The notes below the pieces were generated by a model. It saw nothing but the letters and a program-made list of their open reading frames with translations. It did no database searches and was not told the DNA's origin. The translations under genes were made by a program, and so were the position numbers. From positions 1-18,639 of the forward strand of contig CAXIUT010000112.1 in assembly GCA_964035545.1 (NCBI GenBank): 18,639 nucleotides of DNA, written 5' to 3'. Positions 1-18,639 of the stretch are shown piece after piece. This DNA comes from Bugula neritina (lineage: Eukaryota > Animalia > Bryozoa). Position 1 is the stretch's first letter; the number at the start of each line of letters is the position of its first letter.

Positions 1-93
1 CCCAACCCCAACCCCAACCCCAACCCCAACCCCAACCCCAACCCCAACCCCAACCCCAACCCCAACCCCAACCCCAACCCCAACCCCAACCCC
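1..93 (+). repeat. Left telomere, (CCCCAA)n
   Basis: Perfect C4A2 array at the window start, C-rich strand 5', the orientation of a left chromosome end. Same repeat unit as Tetrahymena-type macronuclear telomeres. Confidence 0.98.
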
Positions 94-276
94 TAATTTG
101 ATATAAAATATTATTATTTCTTTGATATTCAATATGATGGTTCAAAATAATCGTTATCGAAATGAAGTTGATAGTTTAGGCTTTAACTTGGAAGGGGATG
201 GGTCGTTGTTATTTTAGGTTCAGTAGATAACTGAATTGGATATTTATTTGAATATGTTTATTTAAGTTTGATAAAG

Positions 277-2219
277 ATGTTTTTGTGCTGCTGCGACAGT
301 CGTCCCAAAGAATCATACCAGATCATTAAAAAGAATTAATAGAACTAGACAGTTGTTTCCTACGTGACTGATATCAAGTCTCTTGGAAAAGATGTTACCG
401 AGGGAACCGATGTACAAATCCGACCTGTGCGGATGTCTGACTACCAGGAAATCTATGATGATTGTAAAAAGAATAAAAAAAAGTTCTAAGATGGATCTTT
501 CCCTCCCAACGATTATAGCCTCGGAAGAGATCTTAATGTCAAAGCTAATTGGAAAAGAATCTCAGATTTCCTCAACAATCAAACTCTCTTTGATGATAAA
601 ATTGAACCAAATGACGTTATCCACAAAAACGTAGGAGACTGCTACCTTCTTTCCGCTATAGCTGCACTTGCATAAAACCCATAAATAATAAAAAACATAT
701 TCCACGGACAAGAGTATAACTAATAAGGAATCTACCGAGTGGTTTTAAGTGTTGACGGGGTGATACAAGAAGTGATAGTTGACGATTATATTCCTCTAAA
801 TGAACATGATGCACCTATATTTAGTCAACCTAAAACAAGCTAAACTACTTGTTAGATATGGACTTTGATACTTGAGAAGGCACTGGCTAAAATCAAAGGT
901 GGATATGCTAATATTATGGGTAAATCTTAAGTTATACAGAGGGATCACCCAGTTAGATATTTAGAACTGTTACATACTGTCCTGCTGAATCTTTGCTTTT
1001 TGATGAGAAGGAAGCAGAAAAAGTGTGGCATTTGATGGTTGGGTGTTCAGGTTATAATTAACCTTTCTGTGCTACAACTAAAGATAGTCTTTCGAAGTAT
1101 TCTGGGTTGACACCTTAACATACTTTTACAGTTGTATCTATTGGAATATATATAGAATGCTGTGGCTAGTTTGAGCGTTAATTAGATGTCGATTGGAGAG
1201 TTGAGTTCTCATAAGAAGGAAAGAGTGGTTAAGTTGAGAAATCCTTGGGCTCATGAAGGAGAAAGAGGCTGGAAGGGAAGAGCTGGGTTGGATGATAGAG
1301 ATTTTTGGGAAAGTGCTGAAAATGATAGAGAACTTGAATTCATCAATAGAAAAACAGCTGCAGGAGATTATGGAATATTTTATATAACTTTCGAAGACTT
1401 CTTGAAAAACTTCAATCAAATACATTATTGTAATTTCCATAAAAATGGAAAAACAGCTAGAGAAGATCTCACTATCAACAAAAACAACCCGAATGGAAAT
1501 TATTTCTAAGTCAGTGTACCTCATAAAGATATCTACACTTTCTAGTTGAATCAAGGCGCTATTGTAGACCAAAAACCTCAGCAGAGGAAAGAAGAAGGTA
1601 TCTGTAGATCAAGTCTAATTTTGATATAAAAAATAGACGGAAAAATATATTATAAGGCTGGCTCAACTAAACTAAACCAAGAACATTGTATGCTCACTCT
1701 TGAGCTATAAGCAGGACAATATCTTCTTTTCACTCACTTGGATCCAACCAGAGAAACTAATAAATATCCTGAATCAGCGAGTGTTAACGTTCATTCTTCA
1801 TCTTTAGTCGATCTTAAAGCGATAGATCCAGCGAACTGTCAAAAGGCACTTCATGATTCATTTTTAAACGATGGTTTAAGAAATGAGAAAAAGATGATTT
1901 AGAATGATGGATTGATGACTCTGTCATATCGTTTGCTTTTCCAACAGGGAGGATATGGATATATCGTATTTCATAATGACAAGGCTAGTGATAAGAGTTT
2001 TGTGATAAATTATGATGAAGAGTACAAGTTGATTTATGTAGGTAGTTTAATCGATCTCATTTGAAGGTTGTCTAGCCTGCTCATCATGAGAAAGATTTCG
2101 ATATGAGGTTGTAACCTGGAAAAGATATGATTATTTTGGCTAAAGCTAATAATGATAAAGTTGACAGTTGGAAGTTTCCTCCCAAGATGAATGTTCGTCT
2201 CGAACCTTATCTTGGTTGA
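277..2219 (+). CDS. Calpain-family cysteine protease (CysPc domain plus C-terminal domain-III-like region), ~626 aa, 3 introns
   Basis: With TAR=Glu: MFLCCC..., KFEDGSFPP, WKRISDF, GDCYLLSAIAALAENP (catalytic Cys), VIVDDYIP, EIWTLILEKALAKIKGGY, GLTPEHTFTV (His), VKLRNPW (Asn). Introns 920-939, 1134-1155 and 2022-2041 restore the frame. TGA stop at 2217-2219. Confidence 0.92.
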
Positions 2220-2344
2220 TCTGTACCTTTAATAGTATTCCAGTAATATCATTCATCTTATTTTATCTCATACATCTTATATTAATGAAACGAATAATTA
2301 TCTTTAAATAGAATCTGATGAGATGATATAATCTCTATATTTAA

Positions 2345-3151
2345 ATGCAAGAAAAGAAGTCCGAATCATCTTTTGCTCAGATCAAGAGCAAGATCAAAGT
2401 GGTGTTCTTGGGAGAGCAGTCAACGGGCAAGACATCTATCCTCATGCGTTTCATTCATGATCGATTCGAAGAGGGACTTGGAGTATATATTCATTGAAGT
2501 AGGCAACCATAGGAATCGATTTCATGGCTAAAAATCTACATATAGGCCATAATATCCTCAGAATGCAACTTTGGGATACAGCTGGACAATAACGCTTCAG
2601 ATCACTTATTCCTAGCTACCTTAAAGATGCACTTATTGCCTTCATTGTCTTTGACCTGACCAGTACTCATAACATTAGCTAGAGATTAAAAAACATTTGA
2701 CAACTTAAACGAGTGGATCGACCTCTGTCATAATAATAAAAAATAAAAAGCTATTGTGATCTTGCTTGGAAACAAATCTGACCTTGAAGAAACAAGATAA
2801 GTCCCTCCTGAAAGCATAAGAACCAAACTTGAAGAAACAAGTTTGCCTTATTTTTAGGTTAGTGCTAAAACAGGTTAAAACATCAAAGAAGCACTAAATT
2901 TTGCAGGAAATGAGTATTTTAATATACATAACACATCAGAACTGACTTTTAGTACAACAGGGCCTTAAAAATTCAAGAACTAGGTAATAGTTGAAGAAAA
3001 AGGAGAGCATTCCTAGCCAAATGACCTGTCTAAGAAAGGAAAACTTGAGAAAAATCAAAAGAGTCAAAAGAGTTCAAAGAAGATAGGAGAGATGAAGGAA
3101 GAGGTAAAATTGAATGAGAAGAAGAAGGGAAAGAAGAAAGGTTGTTGTTGA
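2345..3151 (+). CDS. RAB6: Rab GTPase, Rab6-like, ~254 aa, 2 introns
   Basis: KVVFLGEQSTGKTS, ATIGIDF, QLWDTAGQERFRSLIPSY (the RSLIPSY switch II is typical of Rab6), LGNKSDL, YFEVSAKTGENI, C-terminal KKKGCC prenylation motif, then TGA. Introns 2483-2502 and 2663-2684. The subfamily call is by motif only. Confidence 0.92.
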
Positions 3152-3364
3152 ATTAATACTATTGATTTAGTTGACTCTTATATTAGAGTTTAGTCATTGT
3201 TGATAATAAAAACTGTCGAAAAGTAGTCTATCATATAATCACCTTTTTTAAGCAAAAGAGACCCTATTTTGATGATATTCCATCTTGATTCTGATCTTTT
3301 TGTCAATAGCTTATCTCTAAGTGCCTTTTTTCTGTAATTTGTTTACTATATGAATTTTTCTTTC

Positions 3365-3715
3365 TCATAAGGAAGTAAAAAAAGTTGGGATGCCTGATGG
3401 AGAAGTCACAAGAAGTTGAGAATTTTGGCTCGACCAAAAAGAGAGCAGTTTATCAGGCATCAGAGATGTATTTGGCACTTAGTTCAAGTTTAAATTGCAA
3501 ATGAAATTGATTCTGTAAACGATTGTTGAAGGATAATACCATAAGAAGTTGTGATTCTGTTTATATTAATAGAAGTTTTTAGATTATGATTTTGTCATCA
3601 GTAGGTAATCCTTTCCTTAAAAGGAATTTGATGAAACGAGCATTTCTTTGATGACCTGAAAAGATTGCTCACTGTTAACTGAACTTTACCATCTTATTTA
3701 ATTATCTTTAGACAT
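3365..3715 (-). CDS. Possible hypothetical protein (116 aa); may be non-coding or a decayed gene
   Basis: Longest ATG-TGA frame I found in the otherwise unexplained 3152-3908 gap (MSKDNEIRWESS...TFFTSL). No recognisable motif. Confidence 0.2.
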
Positions 3716-3908
3716 TTTACTTCATATTGACTAAAATATTTCAGAAAATATTCTTTATTTAAAGAATCTTTAAATGTTCGAAAAAGACTATTGTTATGTT
3801 TTATTGATCATAATTTAGTATATTCTTTTTGTGAAGGTAATATTTTTAATATTTTTATTTCAATAAGTATAATTAATGAAGAAATGATATTTTTCTATTG
3901 ATAAATAA

Positions 3909-6032
3909 TCATGGTTGTTTCTTTTTTTATTCAATTTGAAGCAATATTTATTCTATTCTTTTAGATTTTTGTTAAATTTATTATTATTTTTTACTTTAAT
4001 ACTACTCTGTATATTATGCTTATTATCTTTCTCTTTCTTCAAGTTTATCTTTGATTAATTAAATAAATTATTTCTTTACTATTTCTCTATTCTTTATATT
4101 ATCTTTATTCCTCACATCAAGAAGACTTTCATTCACTATAACTCCCTCTGACAATCTATTCTATATATTAGTTAAATCAGGAATAGCTCTAAATTAATTG
4201 CAATTGGCTAAATGCTATCTTTCTACTCTAAGTAAATTCCAAATGCCTCTTCTTGATATTTAGATTGAACCACTTAAAAATGAAAATAAAGCTGAATTTC
4301 CAAAGATGTCAATAATTGCTGGGGAAAGAGTAAGAGTCCAGACTAATCTGAATAGCAAGTTTACCACCATGATTATGTAATATACTTTTTTTGGAGTAAA
4401 AGTCAAATATTTTCTTAGTAAAAAGTTACGGTTGTTTGATTGTAGAAGATACCAATCCATTTTAAGATCCCAGACATAGGAATATAAAGTTGATATTATT
4501 GATACTGTTAACCAGGCTGCTAAAATAGCTTAAGGATTTTGTTTGTAAAAAAAAGATAAAACTCCTGAAGCCAAAGATAGACAATATTTTATTGTGTTGA
4601 ACATATTACCTTGGCACCAATATCCCTCATCATAACCCAATCTAATGCATTGTAAAATTCTATAAGAAACAGCTATGACTACTGTTAGAAGGGCTACATC
4701 AAAAGCTGATGCACTTTTACAGGGATTTTAATCTAAATTATCGAAATCAAGGCGGGTATGATAACAGATAGTGTAGGCCATATCTCTAAGAGGAGTAATA
4801 AGGGATTGCCATTGATCAGTCATCCAAATGATTGTGAAATCAACTCCTGCAATAGGAGAAATTAAACATCTACCTATTAGTTTGAGGGCATAGAATCGAC
4901 CTCTCCAGTTGAAAATTGGTAGAGGAACAAAGAAGAATCCAAACAGAGAAAACCAAATGATCAAGGAAAGGTGTTATGAGCGAAAAGAACCACTTAGTGT
5001 AAAAATATCACTGATACTAAGTAAATAGATGAGAAAAACAGCTAGAAATAGTGTAGTGAAAATTCCAGCTAATCTGAAGATTTCAGCTGAAGTTGAGTAG
5101 TGATGGTCATTGAAGTGGAAAATCAATCGATGACTGATTTTGTATTTTTCATACATATAGAGATCGAATCCAAGGATCCAAAGATAAAAGGTAAAGATAC
5201 CTATTCCTCTCCATGTTGGAAAATCACGGGCAAAAGCTGAGTTATTTTCTACATCTAGATCTCTGAAAAGAATAATGAAAATAAGAACTCCTAAAACAAT
5301 GATACTAGCTCCGAGTCCTATACCTGCTAGTAAGAAGTCTCTTTTTGAAGATTATTCTTTGTGAGCTGCTTGTCTGATAAACTATCTGGCTACCTTGCTC
5401 TAAACTTATGTATTACTTTCAACGTAGATATCTTCAAGCTGAGTATTGAAATCTTCTTAGACTTTTGCCATTCTTTTTATTTTCTAGTGAGCCGGATTAG
5501 GTGTTGGAATCATTTTTTTTGCATATTTTTTATGTTTTTTAAGGATTTTTCTTTATGCTTCTAGATTGGCTTCTCTCATTTCTGTGACATAACTGATTTA
5601 TATGTAGATGTATTCCATGTATGCTAGATAGAGATCTTTAGTATCTTTTTAAAATTATTTTTATTTGAGTTTGATGATGACTCCGAAACGATCTTAGATT
5701 TCTAAGACTTTCATTTGATAGAAGAGTTCGACTGTTTCATTTTGAATGAAAAATATATGATAAAATATCTCATTGATTGATACTAAGGACTTCTTCAGTT
5801 ATTTTTTCATTCTTTTTAGTTCTTATAATGAATTTGAGTTCAACTATAATTGTTCTTCATGATTAGCTATTTAATTATTGTTTGTGATTTACTCGATAGC
5901 ATTGTCACATTGTTTGATGGTATCAACAATATGTTTGATTAGAATGACAAAAATCTTAAGGATTTAATAGTTAAGATAGCATTCTTTCCATTATGGAATT
6001 GCTATGTCACCAAATGCTTATCCAAACCTCAT
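3909..6032 (-). CDS. XPR1: SPX-EXS domain protein (XPR1/SYG1/PHO1 family phosphate exporter), 707 aa, intronless
   Basis: SPX start MRFGEAF...IPEWKECYLNYEILK and RKILKKHKK, several hydrophobic segments, EXS motifs WMTDQWQS, LQCIR, YSYVWDLKMDW, FRLVW and EISRRGIWNLLRVEREHLANCNEFRA. One frame of 2124 nt ending in TGA. Confidence 0.93.
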
Positions 6033-6160
6033 ACAACTATAATTATATCAAAGACCTTTACAAATGTTAAGCATTAATACAATTTGAATCAATATTTAAA
6101 AATACTTTAAACATTTAAATCATCAAATATTAAAAAAATAAGTGTTCAATATTTAGAGAA

Positions 6161-7358
6161 TCAAAAAAGTTTATTAGATAAATCGAGAGGGCTTAAAGTT
6201 CTCTTTCTTCTGCCGATAAAACTCAACTTCTGTTGAAATTGACTTACAGAATAGTCTCTTTCAATACTTTGTGGCAATCTGAAACTAGAACCTGATCGCT
6301 TTTTAGGACTCAAATTGATAAGCATATGACAATTTTGAACTATTTCCTTTTAAATACGTTCCTCTTCTTAAGGTTTAATAAACGAGTGAAATCTTTGAAT
6401 ACGAGGCAATAAATTTCTAAATAAATTGTTATTTACTTTTATGATCGATTGCTTGGACTCAAGTTACTCTTCTTTCTTCCTAACTCTTTCAATTGTTCAG
6501 CATATACTGGGTCGATCTTTGGATGTTTTTATATCAATCGATTATATGCTCTTAATAGATATAAAAGTACTCGATAGTAATTTGCATGATTTTGCATTGA
6601 GCAGAACAACAAATAGCATTTTGAAGTCTTTTTGGCTAATTGAGATCTTTTTGTCCAAAAATAGTAGATTGACCAACTATAATCATTTCTAACATCTTTT
6701 TTGCTTCAAAACCTGGTGATTCTATTTTAACATTGCCACTGATAACTATATAGCATGCTTAAGGCACTGATCCTTCTCGATATATATAGTTATTCATTTT
6801 AAATTCTTTGAATTTGCAAGAAGAATCAGCAATAATTCTGAGTTCATTTTTGGGAACTTCACTGAACATTTTTGTTAGTACTTCTAAAAACTTTTAAATT
6901 CTTCTAACTTTGACCATATTGATGTAGCTTTAATGAAGCATTGTTGGTATAAATAAAATTTATGCAGGTCCTTCTCTAGGTCTAATTATTGCATCATTTC
7001 TCATCTAAATGACTTCACTTGCACTAATATACTATCCCATCTTGATAAAACTATCATGAATAACTTCTTTTGGTCTTCTTTTTTGTCGATTTCTCAATTA
7101 TTTTCCTGAAGACATACGATAGCACTAAATCTAACCTGATAGTAAGATGATCACATCTGATTTACGGTTAAGAGTGAGACTAAGTTAGTCTTATTACCAA
7201 ATCTTAGCATAAAAGGTAAAACCAACAACAGTATCAAAATCTTAATGTTCATAGTATGGACTAAAGAATGGAGTTAGCATAAAGAATAATTCTACGACTT
7301 CTATTTCATCATGGGTCCAATGCTTTTTGTCTTTTCGAAAGATTTATAGTAAAGACAT
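6161..7358 (-). CDS. Cyclic-nucleotide-binding (cNMP) domain protein, ~385 aa, 2 introns; start uncertain
   Basis: IYREGSVPEACYIVISGNVKI...IFGQKDL...RLQNAIC matches a cNMP beta-barrel, and a more degenerate copy lies upstream (VIILLSGEIECY...IKMGEYI). Two 20-nt introns (6551-6570, 6417-6436) restore the frame. The frame stays open upstream of the ATG at 7358. Confidence 0.75.
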
Positions 7359-7521
7359 CCTTTATTAGTCGATTATTATATTTATAATTTTGTCATCAAT
7401 AAGGGCGTTTATCAGTAGTTACTTCTGTTTTAATATCTAGAGATCATCAATATCAAAGATATTAGACCATTCTAGGTTTAGTAATATTGTATTGAGTATG
7501 ATATGAATAATGATATGAGGA

Positions 7522-10500
7522 TCATCTGGTGCTGAGTTCATCCATAATTTCTTTTCCAAAGAGGTTGAACAAAGCTGTAAGGTTAGCAAGGAATTCGAAG
7601 CCTCTGTTGATTTGAGTGCCTCCCATTTTATCCAAAATAGTTTGGTTAGATGTTAAGTAGAATGATCTCCATCTTTACATTTGCTGATTGGCAGATACTT
7701 CGTCAACTAAGCTATCAATATCTCTCAGCTGTAATAAGAAAGATCTGGGGTAAGTTGCTGCAATGATCTTGTCTTTCAAGTAGAGAGCCAAAGTTGATTG
7801 AGTTGTTTGAGTTACTCTGCTGATCTCTTATATGATGCTCATCACACGGGCTGGGTTTTTGCTTCTATGATTGACTGCATTTTTCAAAGCCGGAATAGCT
7901 ACCATCTTGATAGCAGCTGCCAACAAAGCTGGATATTCTACAAAGACTCGTAAATTATTAGCGAACTCAGTTTCAAGGAATTGATGATAAGTAGTAAAAT
8001 CTTGGTTGGCTTCAAGAGTTTGTCTCATCCAGTGGATGGTTTCAATAAGATAGGTGAGAGATCCTTCATCTCTTTAGTTTTTAATAAGATTATAGAGTTC
8101 CCTGACTGAGGTGTAGGCTTCTTGATATCTTCTTGTTCCAAAATATCCTTTAACAATGAGAAGAGTCATTTCAGAGTACATTTCAAATTAATTGAGTTCT
8201 TGTATTCTAACAAGTTCTTTAGCTCTTCCGAGATACTTCATGCCTTCATCTGGATTATTATTATTAAAGTATATTTTACCAATGAGGAAGTAATCTTTCC
8301 AGAGTCCTTCTCCTTCCCCACCAAAGATCTTTCTTTGCATATCAAGTGAATCTTGGGCATGTCTAAGTGCGACTTCAAAATGCTGGATATGGTTTGAAAA
8401 GTATGAAGCGAGCAATCTACTGACTTGGACATAAAGAGGATGGACATCACCAAGCCATCGTCGAGCATGTTCCATGATAAATGAAATAGGATGTTGAATT
8501 CTATCGATTCTGTTGAGTTTTAAGAACCATTTGATTTCAGCCAACTTGCTTTCGTAAAGGAATCTGCTTGGAGGAGCTGCTACTTCAAGTTTTGAATAGA
8601 GTTCTTTACTTGATTCAGGTGAGGTGAAATTCAAAAGGAACTATCTGATTCTGTCATGCATAGTAGGATGGTTTGTTAAGATTTGGATGTAGGGAATTCT
8701 TGTGCTGGTTTCTTTGGTGAGAAGAGAGCTCAAGTTGTAGAAACTTTATTATGTTTCTGATGAAAGGCAGTCTTAGATTTGTTCGAAAAGGTTGCTAAAG
8801 TCCAAGTTATAGACGTCAGTTTTGAATTCAAAGCCTTCAAAATCAGAAGGGTCAAAGGGTTGTTGAGCCTGGAATAGAGGTCTTCTATGAACTTGATCTT
8901 TTAGATTTATTTCGAAGTGAGTTTGAATGGATTGCAATAAATATGGAATATTGGTTTAAGCAATGTTATTTTCAGCAATGCTGATTCCAAACTTTTATTT
9001 TGAGACGTTATTGATTCTTTTCCAGAGTTCTAAAGTTGATTCTGAGTTTCCAAAGGCAACATTCAAAAAGCTGATAACTCTTCTTCTTTCATAATCTTAT
9101 TGTCTCTCACGTTGAGATACTTTCTAGCTTTGAACCATCACACAATTTTGAATATCAAATCTGAACATATTCTTGAGAGAACGAGCCATTATCTCAGCCT
9201 GTAAGACTCTTCGTAGCCAATTATGTCTTGCTCTTTGGAATACAAGACCGAGATGTCTCATATTTAATCCTGAGAAATGCATCAGATCTGTAAGTTATTT
9301 GGAGTTAGTGAAGTATTAATCTTAATTCTAGATTATTCTGATGAGTTGAGTAACTTTACCTTCAATAGCTTGGCTAATTCTTTCTTGTCTCATTGGTCTT
9401 CTTCTATCTCTGAAAGTTATACCGTCCATTGAATGATCTTGAAGAAATTCTGCTCTTAGCACTCTTGTAGGATCATTTCCATTTTATTTTTCAAGAGGTA
9501 GTAACTCAGTCAATCTTTATATAAAGTAGATGTTTCTGTTGCTGAATGAAGTAGTTGAGATGGGTGTTTTTCTGGTATATGATACAATTTTGCATTTGTT
9601 TTAGTTGAGTAAAGTATCAGCACTAATTCTTGAAGTATCTTCAAATTCTTTGATATTTAGTTGGTTGTAGCATTATCTATTTTTGAAGACATTTCCTTAT
9701 CCACCGAGTCTGGTTTTAGCCATACCTAAAAATCCTTTGTATTCGAATAAAGACATGAATGGTACTTTCAAAATACCTTCATTTTTAGTTACTGATAGCA
9801 CATAATCTAAATTTTTGAACTAGAGAGCTGCTTGTTGATACCTTGGATGCTTTTTATCTGAATTCTAGGGATTCATGAAGTAGAGTTCTAGATAGATATC
9901 ATCAAGAAGAAAGGCAGCATGTTATTTAGTTTGTTCAACAGGTGGAAAGATGCGTTGGTTGGCATGCAGATATAACTAGCTGATGATGACAGCTGCTGCT
10001 CTTTGTATATAATTTTTAAAATCGATGATGAGTTAGACTTATTCTTACCCTCCTAGTAATTATTAAATCCAATTTCTTCTGATTTTGTTTAGATCAGCTT
10101 TGATTCTTTATTTTTCACTGCTGCTTATTCTTCCCATACTTCTGCCTAATAGCAACTAATGTTAATAATTTTGTTGTGATTATCTGTTGATGATAAACTA
10201 ATCCATTTTTGAAAATTGTGGTCTAGCGATAAGTGTGCTCTAGTTTTGCCAATTATTATTGATATTAGTTTGATCTTTGCTCATAGAATTCACATTGCTG
10301 AATGTCATGGCTTGGTTGCCTGAATAGTTGGCGTTAGTTGATAAAGAAAAATTCTTATCGTTTTGATAGTTTACTTTTTCATTTTATATTCTGATTGGAG
10401 AGTTGTTTATGTTGGTGTTGACATTGATGCTGCTGTTCAGTGGTTGACTATTGAAGGAAGAAGTGTTGAGAGTTGTACTATTATTCAAATTTGAACTTTT

Positions 10501-11598
10501 TATGTCATAGTGGGCTGTATTGTTGTTGAAAGTTGAAGAATTTAGGCCTTGGGTATTGAGATTGGTTTGTAGTGAGAGGTTATTGTTGTTATTAAAAGTG
10601 GAAGTAGCTCCTAATCTTGAAGGACTGCTTTCTTGGTTGAAATAACTTTTGTTAATGTTTTATTATCTGTTGATATCTCTATTCAAAAGAGAGTTGATAT
10701 GTAAATTATTCTATTAATTTCTTTTACTTCTAAAGCGATGAAATTAGTCTAGAGTTCTATATCCACTTTTTTTGAATTAGTCTAGAGTAAGAGTAGCATT
10801 ATCTATTTTTTGAGCCCATTCCATTGCACAACTTTTAGTTGGACAGACAAACTCCCAAATTGTCTTCTTTTGACCTGAAAAATGAATTGATAGTTTATCA
10901 TCACTTACATTGCATTTCTAAATTTAACTGATAGGGAAGTGTTGTTTTGGTTTAGGGATTTATAGTTATGAGTTGAAGGGAACTTTCTTTTATGTTGGTA
11001 GTTATTTAGAATAAGCTATTGCTTATAGTCCTTTTAGCACTAAGAAACGTTAGTTGGTTAAAAACATGGTTTGTTGTTTTTTGGCCAAAATTGAATAAGT
11101 GTATTCTTCTCCGTTTATTTTTTGAGAGTATGGACTCTTCCTCATCAGCTTTGATACATCACCATTGAGGTTGTTAGCCATTTCCATTGAGTTGTTGTTT
11201 TGATAGCTACTGTTGAAACTAGGACCTTGGAAGTTAAATCTTTCAGGACTCTGAGAACTTTGGTAGTTGTTTGACCTTTCTGGACTCTGGAGAGATACTT
11301 GGGGAGTATGACTATTGAGACCTCCTTGGAGATTTGGAGATTGTAGAGATCCCTGGATGTTGGGTGTGTTGACAGAAAGTTGGTTGTTGGATGTTTGTTG
11401 AGAAACTTGGTAATTGGAAGATTGAAGACCAACTTGAGCATTAGGCGAGTAGAGGGTATGTTCTCCTTGGGCTTGACCGAACTGTGGAGGTGAGTTGGAG
11501 AACTGTTGTTCTGTTTGGAAGTTTTGTTGTTGATTTCCTTGCATAGATAGTTGTAGATTGGGTTGTTGGTTTTGGTAGAGAGGATTTTATTGCTGCAT
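7522..11598 (-). CDS. CLU (clustered mitochondria)-domain protein with Q/N/S-rich N-terminus, PH-like domain and C-terminal TPR-like repeats, ~1358 aa
   Basis: Supplied ORFs 11050-11544, 8188-8634 and 7828-8028 share one frame. Clu-like VPFMSLFEYKGF, CLU-central LTDLMHFSGLNMRHLGLV...AEIMARSLKNMFR, TPR-like WLGDVHP and AQDSLDMQRKIFG, PH-like ERFLVLKG...WEFVCPTKSCAMEWAQKI. TGA at 7522-7524. Confidence 0.82.
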
Positions 11599-11910
11599 AA
11601 AAATATCATAAGTTGATACTCGTTAATAATCTCTTAAATAACAACAGTCTTAATAAAAAATTAATTATGAAATCAAAGCCTAATGCTTTTGAAAAGTAAT
11701 TTTTATTGCTAAAAAATTTATATTATTGCGATAAAAGAGGTTCTGGGATGAATCAAAGAGAAATAGATGATTATTTTTAATAAAAATATTTGCTGATGAT
11801 AGCTATTTATTAGGAATAAAAGATATTTTTGGCAATAAAAAATATTTATTTGAATATTAATTTGATTTTTTGTTAAAAAGAAAGATTGAATAATTATAAT
11901 GTTTACACTA

Positions 11911-11993
11911 GGGGGTTGGGGTTGGGGTTGGGGTTGGGGTTGGGGTTGGGGTTGGGGTTGGGGTTGGGGTTGGGGTTGGGGTTGGGGGTTGGG
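11911..11993 (+). repeat. Internal (GGGGTT)n telomeric tract, oriented as the right end of the 1-11993 molecule
   Basis: About 83 nt of G4T2 with G5 variants at 11911-11915 and 11984-11988. Preceded by ~310 nt of very AT-rich non-coding DNA and followed immediately by coding sequence. Confidence 0.97.
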
Positions 11994-13718
11994 CTGAGAG
12001 ACCTCAAAATCCACCTCTAATAGCAATTAAAACTGATAACTCGAGATCTGAATCAACCGGAACAGTTTCTAAAACAGTTCAGTCAGATAAACTAGAAGTA
12101 ATAACTAATGAGCACAACCTTTAAGCAACTGATATCAACTATCGAAGGACTAATTGCGATAGTTTAGACACTGAAAGATCATCATATGTAAGTGAGACAT
12201 CGTTTGTAATAGCACTAGCAGATAAAAAATATGTTGAGCAAACATCAAACTATCATCGCAGATATTGAATAGAATCATTGTAGACAGGAAACTAAAATAT
12301 TTGAATAAAAGCATTAGATGAAATAGCAGATGCAATAGCAAATAAACAATCTGACTTCTATCAATCAATAACTATAATAGAAATTGAGATCTAGTTAAAT
12401 TGAATTATAACGAACCAATAAGACAAAGATCGAGTTAGAAATGTAGATTAATAAGGTTAATAAGAATAGGTAGTAGCTTTAGATATAGTTGAAAAAGATA
12501 TAAAGTAAATATTATCTATTGACTTAGTAAAATAGTTAAAAAGTTAAAAAGGTCATAATTGATCCTGCTAAATTGAAACTCTAGTATATTTTTTATTATG
12601 CTAAGTTGAGAAATATTATCAATAGTTTTTTGGATATGAAAGATATTGCTAATATCAGTCAGTGTAATAAATTTTATCACTTGAAATTCAAAAGAGAGCA
12701 AGGAAGGTTATGTTATTTGCATTTTAAAAATAAGTATCAAAATAATATATCTAAATAGATCAAAATGGCCAAAGAGTATTAAAAAATATGGTAAATATTT
12801 CCACAATAAAATATCAAACATAATGCCCTTAAATATCTATTTCTAAAAACCAAACCTGCAACCTATATCGTACCTTATCTTCAGGATGCGCCAGTTCATC
12901 AACCTATTCATTAGCCTCAAAAAAACAAATAAAAATTTACTTGGAAAAATCTATTTAATTCAAATAAAAATCAATAAGTTTAAAAAGAAGAATCTCACAA
13001 AGAAGATACTAAATTTAGCTTATCAAGTTTGAAGAAAGAATAAGATTTCAAAAAGATTTAATCAAAGATATAATCAATTTTCAAAAACATACTCCAGATA
13101 AAGGTGCCATAGGATCTGACATATTTTAGCTAAACTATGTAGAAACAATTTAAGTAGTTAAAATAGTAATTGGGTAAATACAAAGGAGTGAAGGGTACTC
13201 ATTGGGAGTGGAGTGCTCAATTGTATTGTTTGAGTAGGTATATGTATAGTTAAATAAATGAGTTGTTTAATTTATTGCAGGTGATATTTGGATAGCTTTT
13301 GGCTAAAAATAAGGAGTTGTTATTTGTGAGAGATAGTTATTAATATTTGAAGGAAAATTAACAAATTTTGAGGAGTTTGATTTAAAACGTGTCTAGTGAT
13401 AAAGTAGGATTGGAAAAGAAATTTTTGTTTATGGAAAATTAAATATTGAAGTTGAAGTTGGAAAAAGATGTGCTTAGTAACAAGTTGGAACAAATATCTT
13501 TATAAAAATAACAAATAAAAAAGAATTTATCCTATTTATAAATATAAAATAAATAATAAAAGAAAGCTATCTAGAAATACAGATAGTAGCAGAAGATCAT
13601 AGACTAGAAATTCACTTTGATTCGATAGGAGTTGGCTAGATTACCTAACAAGGAGAGGAAGAGTTCATTTGCTAGTAGTTATGAATCTCATCATAGTCAG
13701 GATTTATCAGGATTATGA
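11994..13718 (+). CDS. Coiled-coil protein with an internal F-box-like motif; apparently 5'-truncated at the telomere junction
   Basis: TGA-free frame of 575 codons starting at the first base after the telomere (LRDLKIHLEEQLKLITRD...). Heptad E/K/L-rich composition. LRNIINSFLDMKDIANISQCNKFY near 12606-12680 resembles an F-box. First in-frame ATG is at 12108. Confidence 0.75.
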
Positions 13719-13830
13719 GTTGATGTAGATGATAGTTGATATATTGTGTTTAGATAATGATATTAAAGGATGAGTGTGGGGGTTTGTTTGTCTGTTTTTA
13801 GGAATATGAAATGGCTGTAATTATAAATCA

Positions 13831-14397
13831 ATGGAAAGCCCTTTTAGAGAGATGGAAAGTTAAATTGGGTAAATATCACTCAATTCAAGAAGAGGTTCTA
13901 CTAATAACGGGTCAGGTAAAGAGGTTACTAGTACTAGGAATGATACTAGATTTCTTCCTCTTGACTCATTGCCTCTCAATCCCAGTCATGTTCTTTCTGA
14001 TTCTAGTAAAAGTTAAGCCACTAGATAAATTCAAAAGAAAATCTAATCGATATAGACTGCTCAGAAAACTTTAATAGGTAAGTTTTAGAAGGTTAAGTAA
14101 AATTTAATCAAAGAAATTCAGAAGAAGGATGATTTCAATTCTGACCTATAAAGATAGATAGCATAACTAAAGGGATAGATATAGTAGAGTCGTTCTGATT
14201 TGAATATAATAACAGCTTATATGAAAAAAAAATTGTTGAGGTAGTCTGAGCAGTTAAGTCGTAAGGGTTTGGTGAGGTCAAATAAAAAGCCAAAATCAAT
14301 AGAGGGAAGTAATAAAAGTATCGATACTAGTGGTAATAATATTCGTGTGTAGAAGAAAAGTCGATCACCTAGATAGTATCAATTTAAAAAGTATTGA
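13831..14397 (+). CDS. Hypothetical coiled-coil protein, 188 aa
   Basis: ATG-TGA frame (MESPFREMESEIGEISLNSRRGS...SPREYQFKKY) with an E/K-rich central coiled coil. Fills the space between its neighbours. Confidence 0.7.
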
Positions 14398-14529
14398 ATT
14401 CTTTTTTATTATAAAATTGATTATTTTTCTTTTTATATTTGAATTGTGTCAGCGTTATTTTATCAAATACTAAAAATAGATGTTGATATTGATAAAAGAT
14501 AATAGATGACACAATATTAAGTTATTCTA

Positions 14530-15488
14530 TCATAGATGTTTCTTTAGTTACTCGTAAACGATAAAAACAATGGCATTGGATGGTATTAGACGTATCAGAT
14601 CTGGTTTTAGTCCAGAGTAGAACCCAGAAATACCATTTTATCTCCAAATATGTCTTATTATATTAGTCAAATGTGACTTCTACCTGCCTCTGAAGTCAAA
14701 CATCACTGTCCTCACCACTACTATTGGATAGGTCAAAGTTGAAGCGATTACTATCGTAAAAATATGATTACTTTTGGAAATAGTTGATGCAATAAAAATA
14801 TTCAAGACTGATATTTGAGACTGTTTATACTATTTTATCTTTTAGTAGCAATTGAAGTAGACAACTGCATTGGCTACTGAAAAGAGAGAAGCAGTGAGTC
14901 CTTTATAGAGAGATCTGATTCCTTCCTTGGATATAAAACAAAATTACTGTTTTGTACATTTCTTTGATGACTGCAAAAGGTGCATTGGTTTTATAGTGAT
15001 ATATTTCTGGATGTAGGTATTGCGCCATGAGTCGTGTTCGTACTACCCAGATGGGGTTGGTGAGGACGTTGCAGATCACTCCTGCGGCGATGGTGGCCAT
15101 TAGGTAGGACTATGATTTGGTGTACTTTTTATTGAGGGCATACTGTTTGCTGTATTAATAGATGGGGAAGAAAAGGGAGTGGAATATGGGAATTGCTATC
15201 ACGTTTGTCCTGTACCCTAGTTTGAATTACTACTACCACTGTAAAAGCCTCGCCATCCTTCTTCTTTCCAAATGGTCTTCATGGCGTGAGTGAAATGGGT
15301 GTACTTTCCTGCATTTTTTTGATGACTTGGAGCATTCTAGTTGAAAAGATCAATACGAGCACATTGAGTCTTGTCCTGGCGATATCCAGAGGATTGCAGA
15401 CTGTAACTGAGATAAAGCCAGCTACGAGACCTGAAATGAAGCTGACCACTCGTTCATGGGTTTATTTCTTATCGAAGAGTTCCTTCAT
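14530..15488 (-). CDS. Mitochondrial carrier (SLC25) family protein, NAD+/folate/FAD-carrier type, ~291 aa, 4 introns
   Basis: Three carrier repeats: NPLDIARTRL...WKEEGWRGFYSG, TNPIWVVRTRL...EGIRSLYKG, TYPIVVVRT...ENGISGFYSG. PIWV in repeat 2 is characteristic of the Ndt1/SLC25A32/Rim2 group. Introns 15337-15356, 15217-15236, 14926-14947 and 14751-14771. Confidence 0.92.
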
Positions 15489-15526
15489 TGATATTACTCT
15501 AACTAATTAGGTTTATTATAATATTG

Positions 15527-15792
15527 ATGTACGAATCGTTTTGGATGGGCGTTAGCTTTATGATGATTTGCCGTCATTCTGCATTCAAAATGCTTAGATG
15601 GCCTCATACGTCGGGTACTTATCGAACTAAATAGCCCCTCTGAGTTTGTTTCCTCAGTTGTTGGTCGGAGGACTAATCTGGTCTTTGTTTGATGTGTGTC
15701 GAAGGATAGCGATCGAAGAGGTGCTTAAAAAGGAAGAAATCGATGATCTCAATAAGCAATTGAGAAAAGATGAGAAGTTCTATGATCTTTGA
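15527..15792 (+). CDS. Small two-helix membrane protein, 81 aa, 1 intron; possibly complex I accessory subunit (NDUFC2/B14.5b-like)
   Basis: MYESFWMGVSFMMICRHSAFKMLRWPHTSAPLSLFPQLLVGGLIWSLFDVCRRIAIEEVLKKEEIDDLNKQLRKDEKFYDL after removing the 20-nt intron 15615-15634. Higher GC than its flanks. The family guess is pattern recognition only. Confidence 0.7.
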
Positions 15793-15899
15793 TAATGATT
15801 AAAAACCAATTATGTTCAATCAACTGTATTTGTTATCTTTTATTCAATAGTACTTAGATTAAGAGTGATTAGGTTATTTTAAATAATAAAAAAATACGA

Positions 15900-17393
15900 T
15901 CATATTTATTATGTGTTACAGATGGGTGTAAACTATTTGAAATCTGATCGTTATTCTATTGAATTTACAGTAGATATTTTAGCTATTTTGGTTTATTTAT
16001 TCTATTTTGGTATATTTATTTTTCTTCTTAGCATTTATTGTTTCGTCTATATAAGTTGTCTATCGATTTGTATGATCTAATAATTGATCAAACTGGTAAG
16101 ATCCATGAGTTCCGTCTAATGAACTTATATTTATTCTGTTATTTATTTAAGTTTTCTATGGACTTTGACTAAAGCTGTATAAGACTATCTAATTGAATCT
16201 TAATTTCTTTTTTAGAGTAATACTAAAGTTTGATTTAAAATAGTCAAGCATTATTGATGTTTATTTAGCAGTTGATTTCTTTTGTGATGATTGATTTATT
16301 CTTGAGCTATTTATTTATTTAATGAATGATCTTAGAGTAGAGTTTAATTGAAATGACTTATTTTTTTTTAAGTAGTTGTTTGTATTGAATCATTGATGGG
16401 TTGTGATACGAAATTCATATATTTTTATGAATAAAATTTTATATTTGATGTCTTTATTGTTGAATTAAACTTCTTTATTGTCTATGTACTCCTTTCTATC
16501 ATCTTCTTATCATTTTCATTTTGAATTACCTCATATGATTTATTTGAATGACTAAATGGTGATTTAGGTGTTACTTATGATTAGTCAAATGTTCCATCCT
16601 GGTTTATTTTATATGCGAATAGTTAGATCCAACTCAAACGTCTAAAATAATCTTTGGTTAGTAGTTTTTTTAACAATATTTGTGTCTTCTACGATACTGG
16701 ATGACTATCAATGGGTAGTATTATTTAGCTGTTGTTGATTGTACTGATAAGCATGGCGATTGATTTTGATTGGAATGGACAGACTCCAAATAGCATTTAG
16801 TATAGTACTACGCCTAGCGACCAGATATCTGCTTTCATGGTATAGTTTTATCCTCTGAGTATTTCAGGTGCCATGTAGATGGGCGATCCTAGCATAGTTT
16901 TTGCCATGTTTTATCCTGGTTTTAGACCTTTGCAAAAACCAAAATCACCTAGTTTTACTTTATCATTGCTAAAAAATATATTTTATGGCTTTATATCTCG
17001 ATGCATTATGTTGTATCTATTCAGCACTTTAAAGGCTTATAGAAGTTGTCGGAATATTCTTAGAGATTTTTGTTATGAAAATGATCCTTCTCGTTGCATG
17101 GCTTCAAGTAAATTACCTCCATTGCAGTACTAATAAACAAAATAGTAGTTATTTTTTGTTTGAAAGTGGTCTTAGTATTTTACTATGTATTAGCATGGAG
17201 AGATAGTGGATAGAGTTTGAATTTAGTTGGTGGTGCATTGTTCTAGTTGCGAGTTTTTTTAAAATTTAGAAACGGGTATTATTTTTACAGCAAATTATCC
17301 TTGTTTTTTAGGATGACTGGCTTTGTACACTTAGGCGTAGTTACCCTCTCCGATCTTCTAGAGTAAACTATAGTTATTAATCACTTTAACCAT
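15900..17393 (-). CDS. Ser/Thr protein kinase, ULK/ATG1-like, 497 aa, intronless
   Basis: IGEGNYAEVYKA, FAVKII, TNEIQTL (alphaC Glu), VYEYCNGGNL, MHRDIKPENI, KLGDFGF, LGSPIYMAPE, KADIWSLGVVLYEMLFG. Helical C-terminal tail. TGA at 15900-15902. Confidence 0.93.
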
Positions 17394-17433
17394 TTGTTTA
17401 TTATAATGTTATCTATCTAACAAACAAAAACTT

Positions 17434-17537
17434 ATCAAATACTTAGAGATAATATGAACTAATTAGAGATAATATCAAATAACCAGAGATAAAATCAGAT
17501 AATTAGAGATAAAATCAGATAACTAGAGATAAATCAT
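17434..17537. repeat. Minisatellite, ~5 imperfect copies of a 20-bp unit (AATTAGAGATAA[A/T]ATCA[A/G]AT)
   Basis: Units at 17441, 17461, 17481, 17501 and 17521, each with AGAGATAA in the same register. Confidence 0.88.
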
Positions 17538-18500
17538 AGGAAGGCAACTTTCTTTTTGGATGTTAGTGGTTTAGATTAGCTAATACCACTGATACTATTT
17601 TTAAATTATCTTACTTTAGTTAGTTTTGACTATATTATGCTGTCAACTTCTTTCATCATCTTCTTAGTTTAGTATTCAGAGGTTTATCCATCATTAGATG
17701 ACATTTGATTTAAGGTCATGACTTCCATTGATAAGTTGGATATCGTTTTTAGTAAATTTTTACTTAAAGAATATGCGAATTATCCTTTTGCTGCTCTTTT
17801 TATCTTTATTATTTCATCTGTATCTGCTATCTTATCTTTCAATATCGATATTATTGATTGATATTGGTTATGAATTTGATTTATGTCTTGTTGGGTCTAT
17901 CTGATTACTGTATTCTCGTATCCATCTTGATATGTCAATCTATGTTAGTGATGATTTACCTTCTCCAAGGAAAGAATGCTTTTTTGAGTAGATTGCGATG
18001 GTATACTTGATCCATTTATTTATTCTTCTTTTTTAAAGATTTCATCGCTTTGCTATGATTGACAAGAACATTCCAACATTTTTTTACATTAGATTGATAG
18101 TAATATTTTTATGTGATAGATTATAATAATTTTTATCTTTTTATTTGCTATTTTTTCATCTAAATAGTTGATATTTAAAGATCAGATCCGAATTGTTTTA
18201 ATGATTGTATTGTTTATTACGATTGTTATGTATATTATGTGATCTATATTTTATTGATATTACTTTTGTTTCATAGGGCTATGTTTTTTATTGGTGTTTT
18301 TGATTGAAGAAGTTGGTTATTTATTTTATTGCGTATTATTTTATGTTTTAGATTATGATTGTAAATTATGAGAGATCTTATGTTGTAAATTGGGTTCTTT
18401 GTGATATCATTTCTTGTTAAAAATGGGTTGATTTCTCTTTGAAGAACGTTGTTAATTGGGTTAGGGTTTGATGCAGTTATGATACGGAATATTTTACCAT
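17534..18500 (-). CDS. POC5-like centrin-binding centriole/basal-body protein, ~308 aa, 2 introns
   Basis: Two Sfi1-type repeats (YYYQSNVKKCWNVL and VYHRNLLKKAFFPWRR), then a coiled coil and LSKNLLKTISNLSMEVMTL, resembling the POC5 box (MKKAFMRGVCALNLEAM). Introns of 20 nt at 18244-18263 and 17940-17959 are each needed to avoid a TGA. Confidence 0.68.
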
Positions 18501-18558
18501 CTTTTTATATTTTTAAGTCAATAAATTATATTAAGTTTTATAAAGGTAAAAAATGTAA

Positions 18559-18639
18559 GGGGTTGGGGTTGGGGTTGGGGTTGGGGTTGGGGTTGGGGTT
18601 GGGGTTGGGGTTGGGGTTGGGGTTGGGGTTGGGGTTGGG
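18559..18639 (+). repeat. Right telomere, (GGGGTT)n
   Basis: Perfect G4T2 array running to the window end. Confidence 0.98.

Follow-up and report, generated by a model that had tools for sequence, protein, structure and literature searches.

Contig CAXIUT010000112.1 of assembly GCA_964035545.1, filed under the bryozoan Bugula neritina, was analysed over its full length of 18,639 nucleotides (nt), which we call the window. The sequence is of metagenomic origin and comes from the macronucleus of an uncultured ciliate; it has C4A2/G4T2 telomeres, introns of about 16–20 nt and several genes. Its G+C content ranges from 28 to 36%, and counting TGA alone as a stop opens long reading frames on both strands. 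These frames contain many TAA and TAG codons (together TAR, where R is A or G), and the meaning of those codons is the subject of this study. The analysis demonstrates that both encode glutamate, that they are interchangeable and that TGA acts as the stop. Genes were identified by Pfam searches with stop-free pieces of the frames and, for the Rab6/Ypt6 and kinase genes, by PDB searches; they lie as follows.

277–2220, plus strand: calpain-family cysteine protease with tiny introns (Pfam PF00648, PDB alignments; the end coordinate is taken from a preliminary description of this DNA)
2345–3151, plus strand: Rab6 gene (Ras-family GTPase by Pfam, Rab6/Ypt6 by PDB)
3909–6032, minus strand: SPX-EXS (XPR1/PHO1-like) phosphate exporter (Pfam PF03124), with 27 TAA and 7 TAG codons in frame and a TGA stop at 3909–3911
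6537–7724, minus strand: unnamed gene with a syntenic ortholog in the relative L009 (43% identity over 276 codons)
7522–11598, minus strand: CLU/eIF3_p135-type gene with a C-terminal TPR region (Pfam PF12807 and TPR), 1,358 codons with 41 TAA, 11 TAG and no TGA, and a TGA stop at 7522–7524
11053–11586, minus strand: Gln-rich stretch at the N terminus of CLU; its 178 codons include 32 CAR and no TAR
14533–15349 (approximate limits), minus strand: multi-exon mitochondrial carrier (Pfam PF00153) with TAA and TAG in frame
15900–17393, minus strand: Ser/Thr protein kinase, ULK/NEK-like (PDB searches), with 33 TAA and 10 TAG codons in frame and a TGA stop at 15900–15902

TAR codons are abundant in these genes. 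Across 3,305 hand-framed codons there are 117 TAA and 36 TAG beside 124 GAA and 29 GAG, and TAR would make up about half of the glutamate codons. The frames that contain them can be followed through related DNA: CLU shares 40% identity with its counterpart in the relative L005 across 1,424 aligned columns, all within a single TGA-free frame, and SPX-EXS aligns with that of L009 over 706 columns at 60% identity. Strains were compared by placing contigs of four public runs on positions 7200–13100, where they show many differences from the window. Within the CLU frame, 29 of the 33 listed differences are synonymous, and one of the remaining four is a TAG>TAA change at 10156. Because strain variants are mostly synonymous and orthologs align in one frame, the CLU and SPX-EXS frames are taken to be genes under purifying selection and not pseudogenes. 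One of the runs (X2) also carries an in-frame 24-nt insertion (8 codons) at 10561, in an Asn/Ser-rich low-complexity part of CLU.

The third conventional stop codon behaves differently from TAR. TGA is absent from all 2,541 in-frame codons of CLU, SPX-EXS and the kinase, whereas each off-frame reading of these genes holds 8 to 46. It closes CLU, SPX-EXS, the kinase and Rab6, the last of which ends in Gly-Cys-Cys followed by TGA at 3149–3151; a C-terminal Cys-Cys is the usual prenylation end of Rab proteins. The distance from the end of the CLU alignment to the TGA is 3 codons in the window and 5–6 in relatives, and SPX-EXS behaves likewise. At the approximately five gene ends examined UGA behaves as the sole stop, as in NCBI genetic code table 30 and as the preliminary description had proposed.

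Solved protein structures provide a referee for individual codons. PDB searches were run with short peptides (≤86 residues) bearing X at every TAR codon, and the residue opposite each X was read from the alignments. TAG faces glutamate at six of six sites, in Rab, the kinase (twice), XPR1 and calpain (twice):

2855–2857: TAG in Rab, F-x-(V/T)SAK; Glu in Rab14, Rab2A and Rab27A
17130–17132: TAG in the kinase hinge; Glu in ULK2, PKC beta, MELK and BRSK2
17358–17360: TAG in the kinase; Glu in MST1/2
4215–4217: TAG in EXS, R-x-E-N-E-H; Glu in human XPR1 and also in two relatives
853–855: TAG in calpain; Glu in calpain-1
954–956: TAG in calpain; Glu in calpain-1, with a weak E-value

TAA also faces glutamate at conserved positions. 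The site at 2590–2592 (Rab WDTAGQ-x-RF) is Glu in all five Rab6/Ypt6 alignments shown, and those at 4260–4262 and 4194–4196 in EXS are Glu in human XPR1, the former in two relatives as well. In the kinase, 17073–17075 is Glu in three of four kinases and the alphaC site at 17223–17225 is Glu in PKC alpha, PKC beta and PLK2. The N-terminal SPX peptide found no match in the PDB; its TAA at 5991–5993 (P-x-W) faces Glu in two relatives. At variable positions TAA lies opposite assorted residues, with lysine appearing only once (PLK2 at TAA 17190). Every codon cited by the preliminary description is present where it had been placed, and most of its examples of conserved glutamate sites were borne out by these comparisons (TAA at 2590, 4260, 5991 and 17223; TAG at 853, 2855, 4215 and 17130). 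Two are weak: the calpain TAA at 673–675 faces Leu in calpain-1, and the kinase TAA at 16983–16985 (HRDIKP-x-N) lies opposite Ala in NEK2 and opposite Gln in ULK1. These two sites leave the result unchanged.

A broader test required orthologous genes. A large representative search with a stop-free 150-residue piece of CLU returned mostly short fragments and unrelated TPR proteins, with no full-length named ortholog among them, and a word search with a piece of EXS likewise returned mostly short fragments; a metagenome scan with a CLU piece gave 282 pattern matches, none of which was confirmed. Because no distant standard-code orthologs were found, a classical Codetta-style test against them was impossible. 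The short fragments are genes of relatives that standard gene prediction had broken off at TAR codons. The window residue that follows the end of a fragment is Glu in 9 of 22 cases, which is a lead only, as truncation at a contig edge is indistinguishable from a stop there. Through these fragments the relatives' own contigs were obtained, namely L003–L008 (JGI metagenomes), L001/L002 (ENA), L009 and L010/L011 (Logan). One of the L003–L008 contigs ends in G4T2. L009, from a related species, is syntenic with the window and has CLU, the unnamed gene at 6537–7724 and SPX-EXS in the same order.

For the codon test, genes of the window and of four relatives were translated with TGA as sole stop and TAR masked as X, aligned by BLASTP and read back to codons. 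CLU supplied the main data set, and the main tally used one relative per gene (L005, L010 and L009). The 72 TAA codons of the window face E 37 times, D 7, Q 6, K 5 and T 4, with other residues at most twice each. Glutamate has the best log-likelihood (lnL) for TAA; its rivals fall behind by 25/34 units for Asp, 38/80 for Gln, 55/117 for Lys and 126/218 for Tyr (BLOSUM62/empirical model). The 22 TAG codons face E 8 times, N 3, D 2, A 2 and seven other residues once each. Glutamate is again the best assignment, with Asp 4.7/4.8, Gln 8.4/15 and Lys 12/23 units behind. Against a background of 5.1% Glu, 37 of 72 corresponds to P = 1e-28 for TAA and 8 of 22 to P = 8e-6 for TAG. When each window codon is counted once, Glu is found at 40 of 78 TAA and 8 of 23 TAG sites.

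The same alignments provide reference profiles for codons of known meaning. GAR-coded Glu faces E at 59%, D at 12%, Q at 5% and K at 4% of sites, and this is the profile that TAA matches; CAR-coded Gln faces Q at 45% and AAR-coded Lys faces K at 55%. In the reverse direction, the relatives' TAA codons most often lie opposite Glu in the window (8 of 23). TAA and TAG face each other eight times between orthologs, and TAR faces the identical TAR 17 times. These eight swaps and the TAG>TAA strain polymorphism at 10156 show that the two codons are interchangeable. When a meaning was inferred for 62 codons from the alignments, TAA and TAG were assigned to Glu and 57 of the other 60 to their standard residue, with the three exceptions represented by n ≤ 2. 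All other codons therefore appear to keep their standard meaning, again as in table 30. Judged from the aligned sequences, glutamine (table 6), tyrosine (table 29) and, for UAA, lysine (the code of Oligohymenophorea sp. PL0344) are all rejected by the likelihood test.

Composition of single-residue-rich stretches points in the same direction. The preliminary description had noted that glutamine in the Gln-rich part of CLU is encoded by CAR only, and this holds for all 178 codons at 11053–11586: if TAR were glutamine at the usage seen elsewhere (57% of TAR+CAR), 32 CAR and no TAR would have P = 1.5e-12. Similarly, the Lys-rich tail of Rab has 16 AAR and no TAR codons (P = 3e-4). Both stretches were picked post hoc as stop-free pieces and are counted as support only.

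It is very probable from these results that the window belongs to an uncultured ciliate, most likely a peritrich, in which UAA and UAG encode glutamate, UGA is the only stop and the code is NCBI table 30. The preliminary description had named this code correctly, and its claim that both codons mean glutamate and not glutamine is upheld by the ortholog likelihood test and by the solved structures. By analogy with other stop-reassigned ciliates, dedicated tRNAs with UUA and CUA anticodons would be charged with Glu by glutamyl-tRNA synthetase, and eRF1 would be restricted to UGA.

Several observations weigh against this interpretation. A tRNA scan of the window and 11 related loci found none, and the window offers no eRF1 or peptide evidence. 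The relatives use the same code and are not fully independent referees, although the codon test remains informative because their glutamate is mostly GAR-coded. The TAG sample is small, with Asp just 4.7 lnL units behind Glu; the case against Asp is made by the structures, where all six TAG sites are Glu. Human ULK1 has Gln at three kinase TAA sites (16983 and two further), and in the relatives Gln stands opposite about 8% of TAA sites, a rate that glutamate substitution predicts but at which low-level ambiguous decoding is conceivable. Finally, with only about five gene ends seen, there is room for context-dependent termination at TAR.

The last two points are those that would favour a glutamate code with double use, in which UAA and UAG also end some genes or are read ambiguously with a minor share of Gln. 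Context-dependent codes are known in other ciliates (PMC4967479) and in Blastocrithidia (PMC12153298). In the window, all gene ends examined are TGA and lie 0–6 codons from the ends of the orthologs, and the 8% share of Gln at TAA is near the 5% at GAR-coded Glu; double use is accordingly improbable here. Table 6, by which UAA and UAG encode glutamine in Tetrahymena and Paramecium, deserves still less credence. It shares with the window the use of both codons as sense, UGA as only stop and C4A2-type telomeres, which are common to Tetrahymena-type ciliates, and the ULK1 residues and the 6 of 72 TAA sites facing Gln in relatives would agree with it. The residue in question is nevertheless Glu here: glutamine trails it by 38 to 80 lnL units for TAA and by 8 to 15 for TAG, Gln stands opposite 45% of CAR-coded Gln but opposite 8% of TAA, the Gln-rich stretch of CLU uses CAR exclusively, and the Rab DTAGQ-x-RF site is Glu in every Rab alignment shown.

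Two further explanations are both exceedingly improbable. The split code of Oligohymenophorea sp. PL0344, a member of the same ciliate class as the peritrichs, has UAA as lysine and UAG as glutamate, with a UGA stop (PMC10553269), and the TAG=Glu result is compatible with it. Lysine occurs at just 5 of 72 TAA sites, however, and lies 55 to 117 lnL units behind Glu; TAA and TAG, which have separate meanings in PL0344, are exchanged here between orthologs and between strains; the Lys-rich Rab tail contains no TAR; and the median intron of PL0344 is 57 bp (PMC10553269), far longer than the 16–20 nt found here. The other explanation would make TAR codons true stops in decayed pseudogenes or misassembled sequence. 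The contig does contain an internal telomere tract, which indicates that its assembly is not flawless, but 29 of 33 CLU strain variants are synonymous, orthologs align through the TAR codons over 700–1,400 codons in one frame, TGA is strictly excluded from the frames, and sequence nearly identical to the window was recovered in the runs of three studies. Outside the ciliates, UAR=Glu is also used by the trypanosomatid Blastocrithidia (table 31), where UGA is tryptophan and UAA doubles as a stop. Table 31 was considered and ruled out: TGA closes genes in the window and is absent from its frames, and the three genes counted have 26 in-frame TGG codons.

The architecture of the DNA is that of small macronuclear chromosomes, bounded by three telomere tracts.

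1–93: C4A2 telomere repeat (CCCCAA, 15.5 copies), which caps the left side of a complete minichromosome roughly 12 kb long
11912–11993: internal G4T2 telomere tract (GGGGTT, 13.5 copies), right end of the 12-kb unit
18559–18639: G4T2 telomere repeat (GGGGTT, 13.5 copies), right end of the window

Positions 1–11993 make up one complete macronuclear chromosome, about 12 kb from telomere to telomere, with five genes, namely calpain, Rab6, SPX-EXS, the unnamed gene and CLU. The remainder (11994–18639) is a second fragment fused to the internal tract, with a telomere at its far end only and no left telomere. One contig of run X3 (3,791 nt, depth 2, zero mismatches) crosses the tract at identical tract length, and the contigs of runs X1, X2 and X4 break there. 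The join could be a chimera produced during library preparation or assembly, or it could be a genuine joined form. L010/L011, from a more distant relative, are Logan contigs of 110 and 67 kb with TAR-rich frames, in which a few kb separate SPX-EXS from a mitochondrial carrier gene that is 51% identical to the carrier in the second part of the window. Given the far greater length of these contigs, chromosome size varies widely within the group. Three studies have runs with near-identical DNA, filed under three organism labels, and the ciliate is apparently widespread.

Some smaller features accompany these genes. Tiny GT..AG introns of 16–20 nt were placed by frame and homology at 920–939 (20 nt) and, in Rab6, at 2483–2502 (20 nt) and approximately 2650–2665 (about 16 nt). 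The unnamed gene at 6537–7724 had no hit in a Pfam search and, judged by eye, is possibly cyclic-nucleotide-binding-like. In the second part, a long TGA-free frame on the plus strand (12000–14400) encodes a charged, coiled-coil-like protein with 41 TAA and 32 TAG in 781 codons. A 20-nt unit is repeated five times in tandem (85% matches) at 17434–17533, immediately upstream of the start codon of the kinase (17393), and could be a promoter or regulatory repeat. An Rfam search of the window returned no family and no rRNA.

Peritrich ciliates are already known to use the UAR=Glu code with UGA as sole stop. PMC4967479 credits the first report of it to Sanchez-Silva et al. 2003 and has a further prediction of it for Carchesium and Campanella; it is described for Peritrichia and regarded as having evolved once, in that group (PMC10553269). 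The window shares with the table 30 peritrichs (Vorticella, Opisthonecta, Carchesium, Campanella) both glutamate codons, UGA as the only stop, standard meanings elsewhere and a ciliate host. It stands apart from them in that TAR makes up about half of its glutamate codons and that its chromosome is a 12-kb multi-gene unit. Three peritrich genomes have narrow intron-length distributions like that of Paramecium (PMC13685798), and the tiny introns here agree with these. Together with the shared code, this makes it likely, by analogy, that the organism belongs in Peritrichia. A position outside or at the base of Peritrichia is unlikely; it would mean that ciliates acquired UAR=Glu on two occasions, or at an earlier stage than has been supposed, in an organism with multi-gene minichromosomes of 6–18 kb and TAR as half of its glutamate codons.

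The code has practical consequences for sequence collections. Gene callers set to the standard, bacterial or table 6 code will fragment or misread each of the organism's genes, and public protein collections hold its genes and those of its relatives as fragments of 40–200 residues cut at TAR codons. One EXS fragment is labelled ‘flagellar biosynthesis protein FlhB’ by its source. Contigs of the organism call for annotation with table 30. No new principle follows unless the organism lies outside Peritrichia; the result adds an uncultured ciliate to the group in which UAA and UAG encode glutamate.

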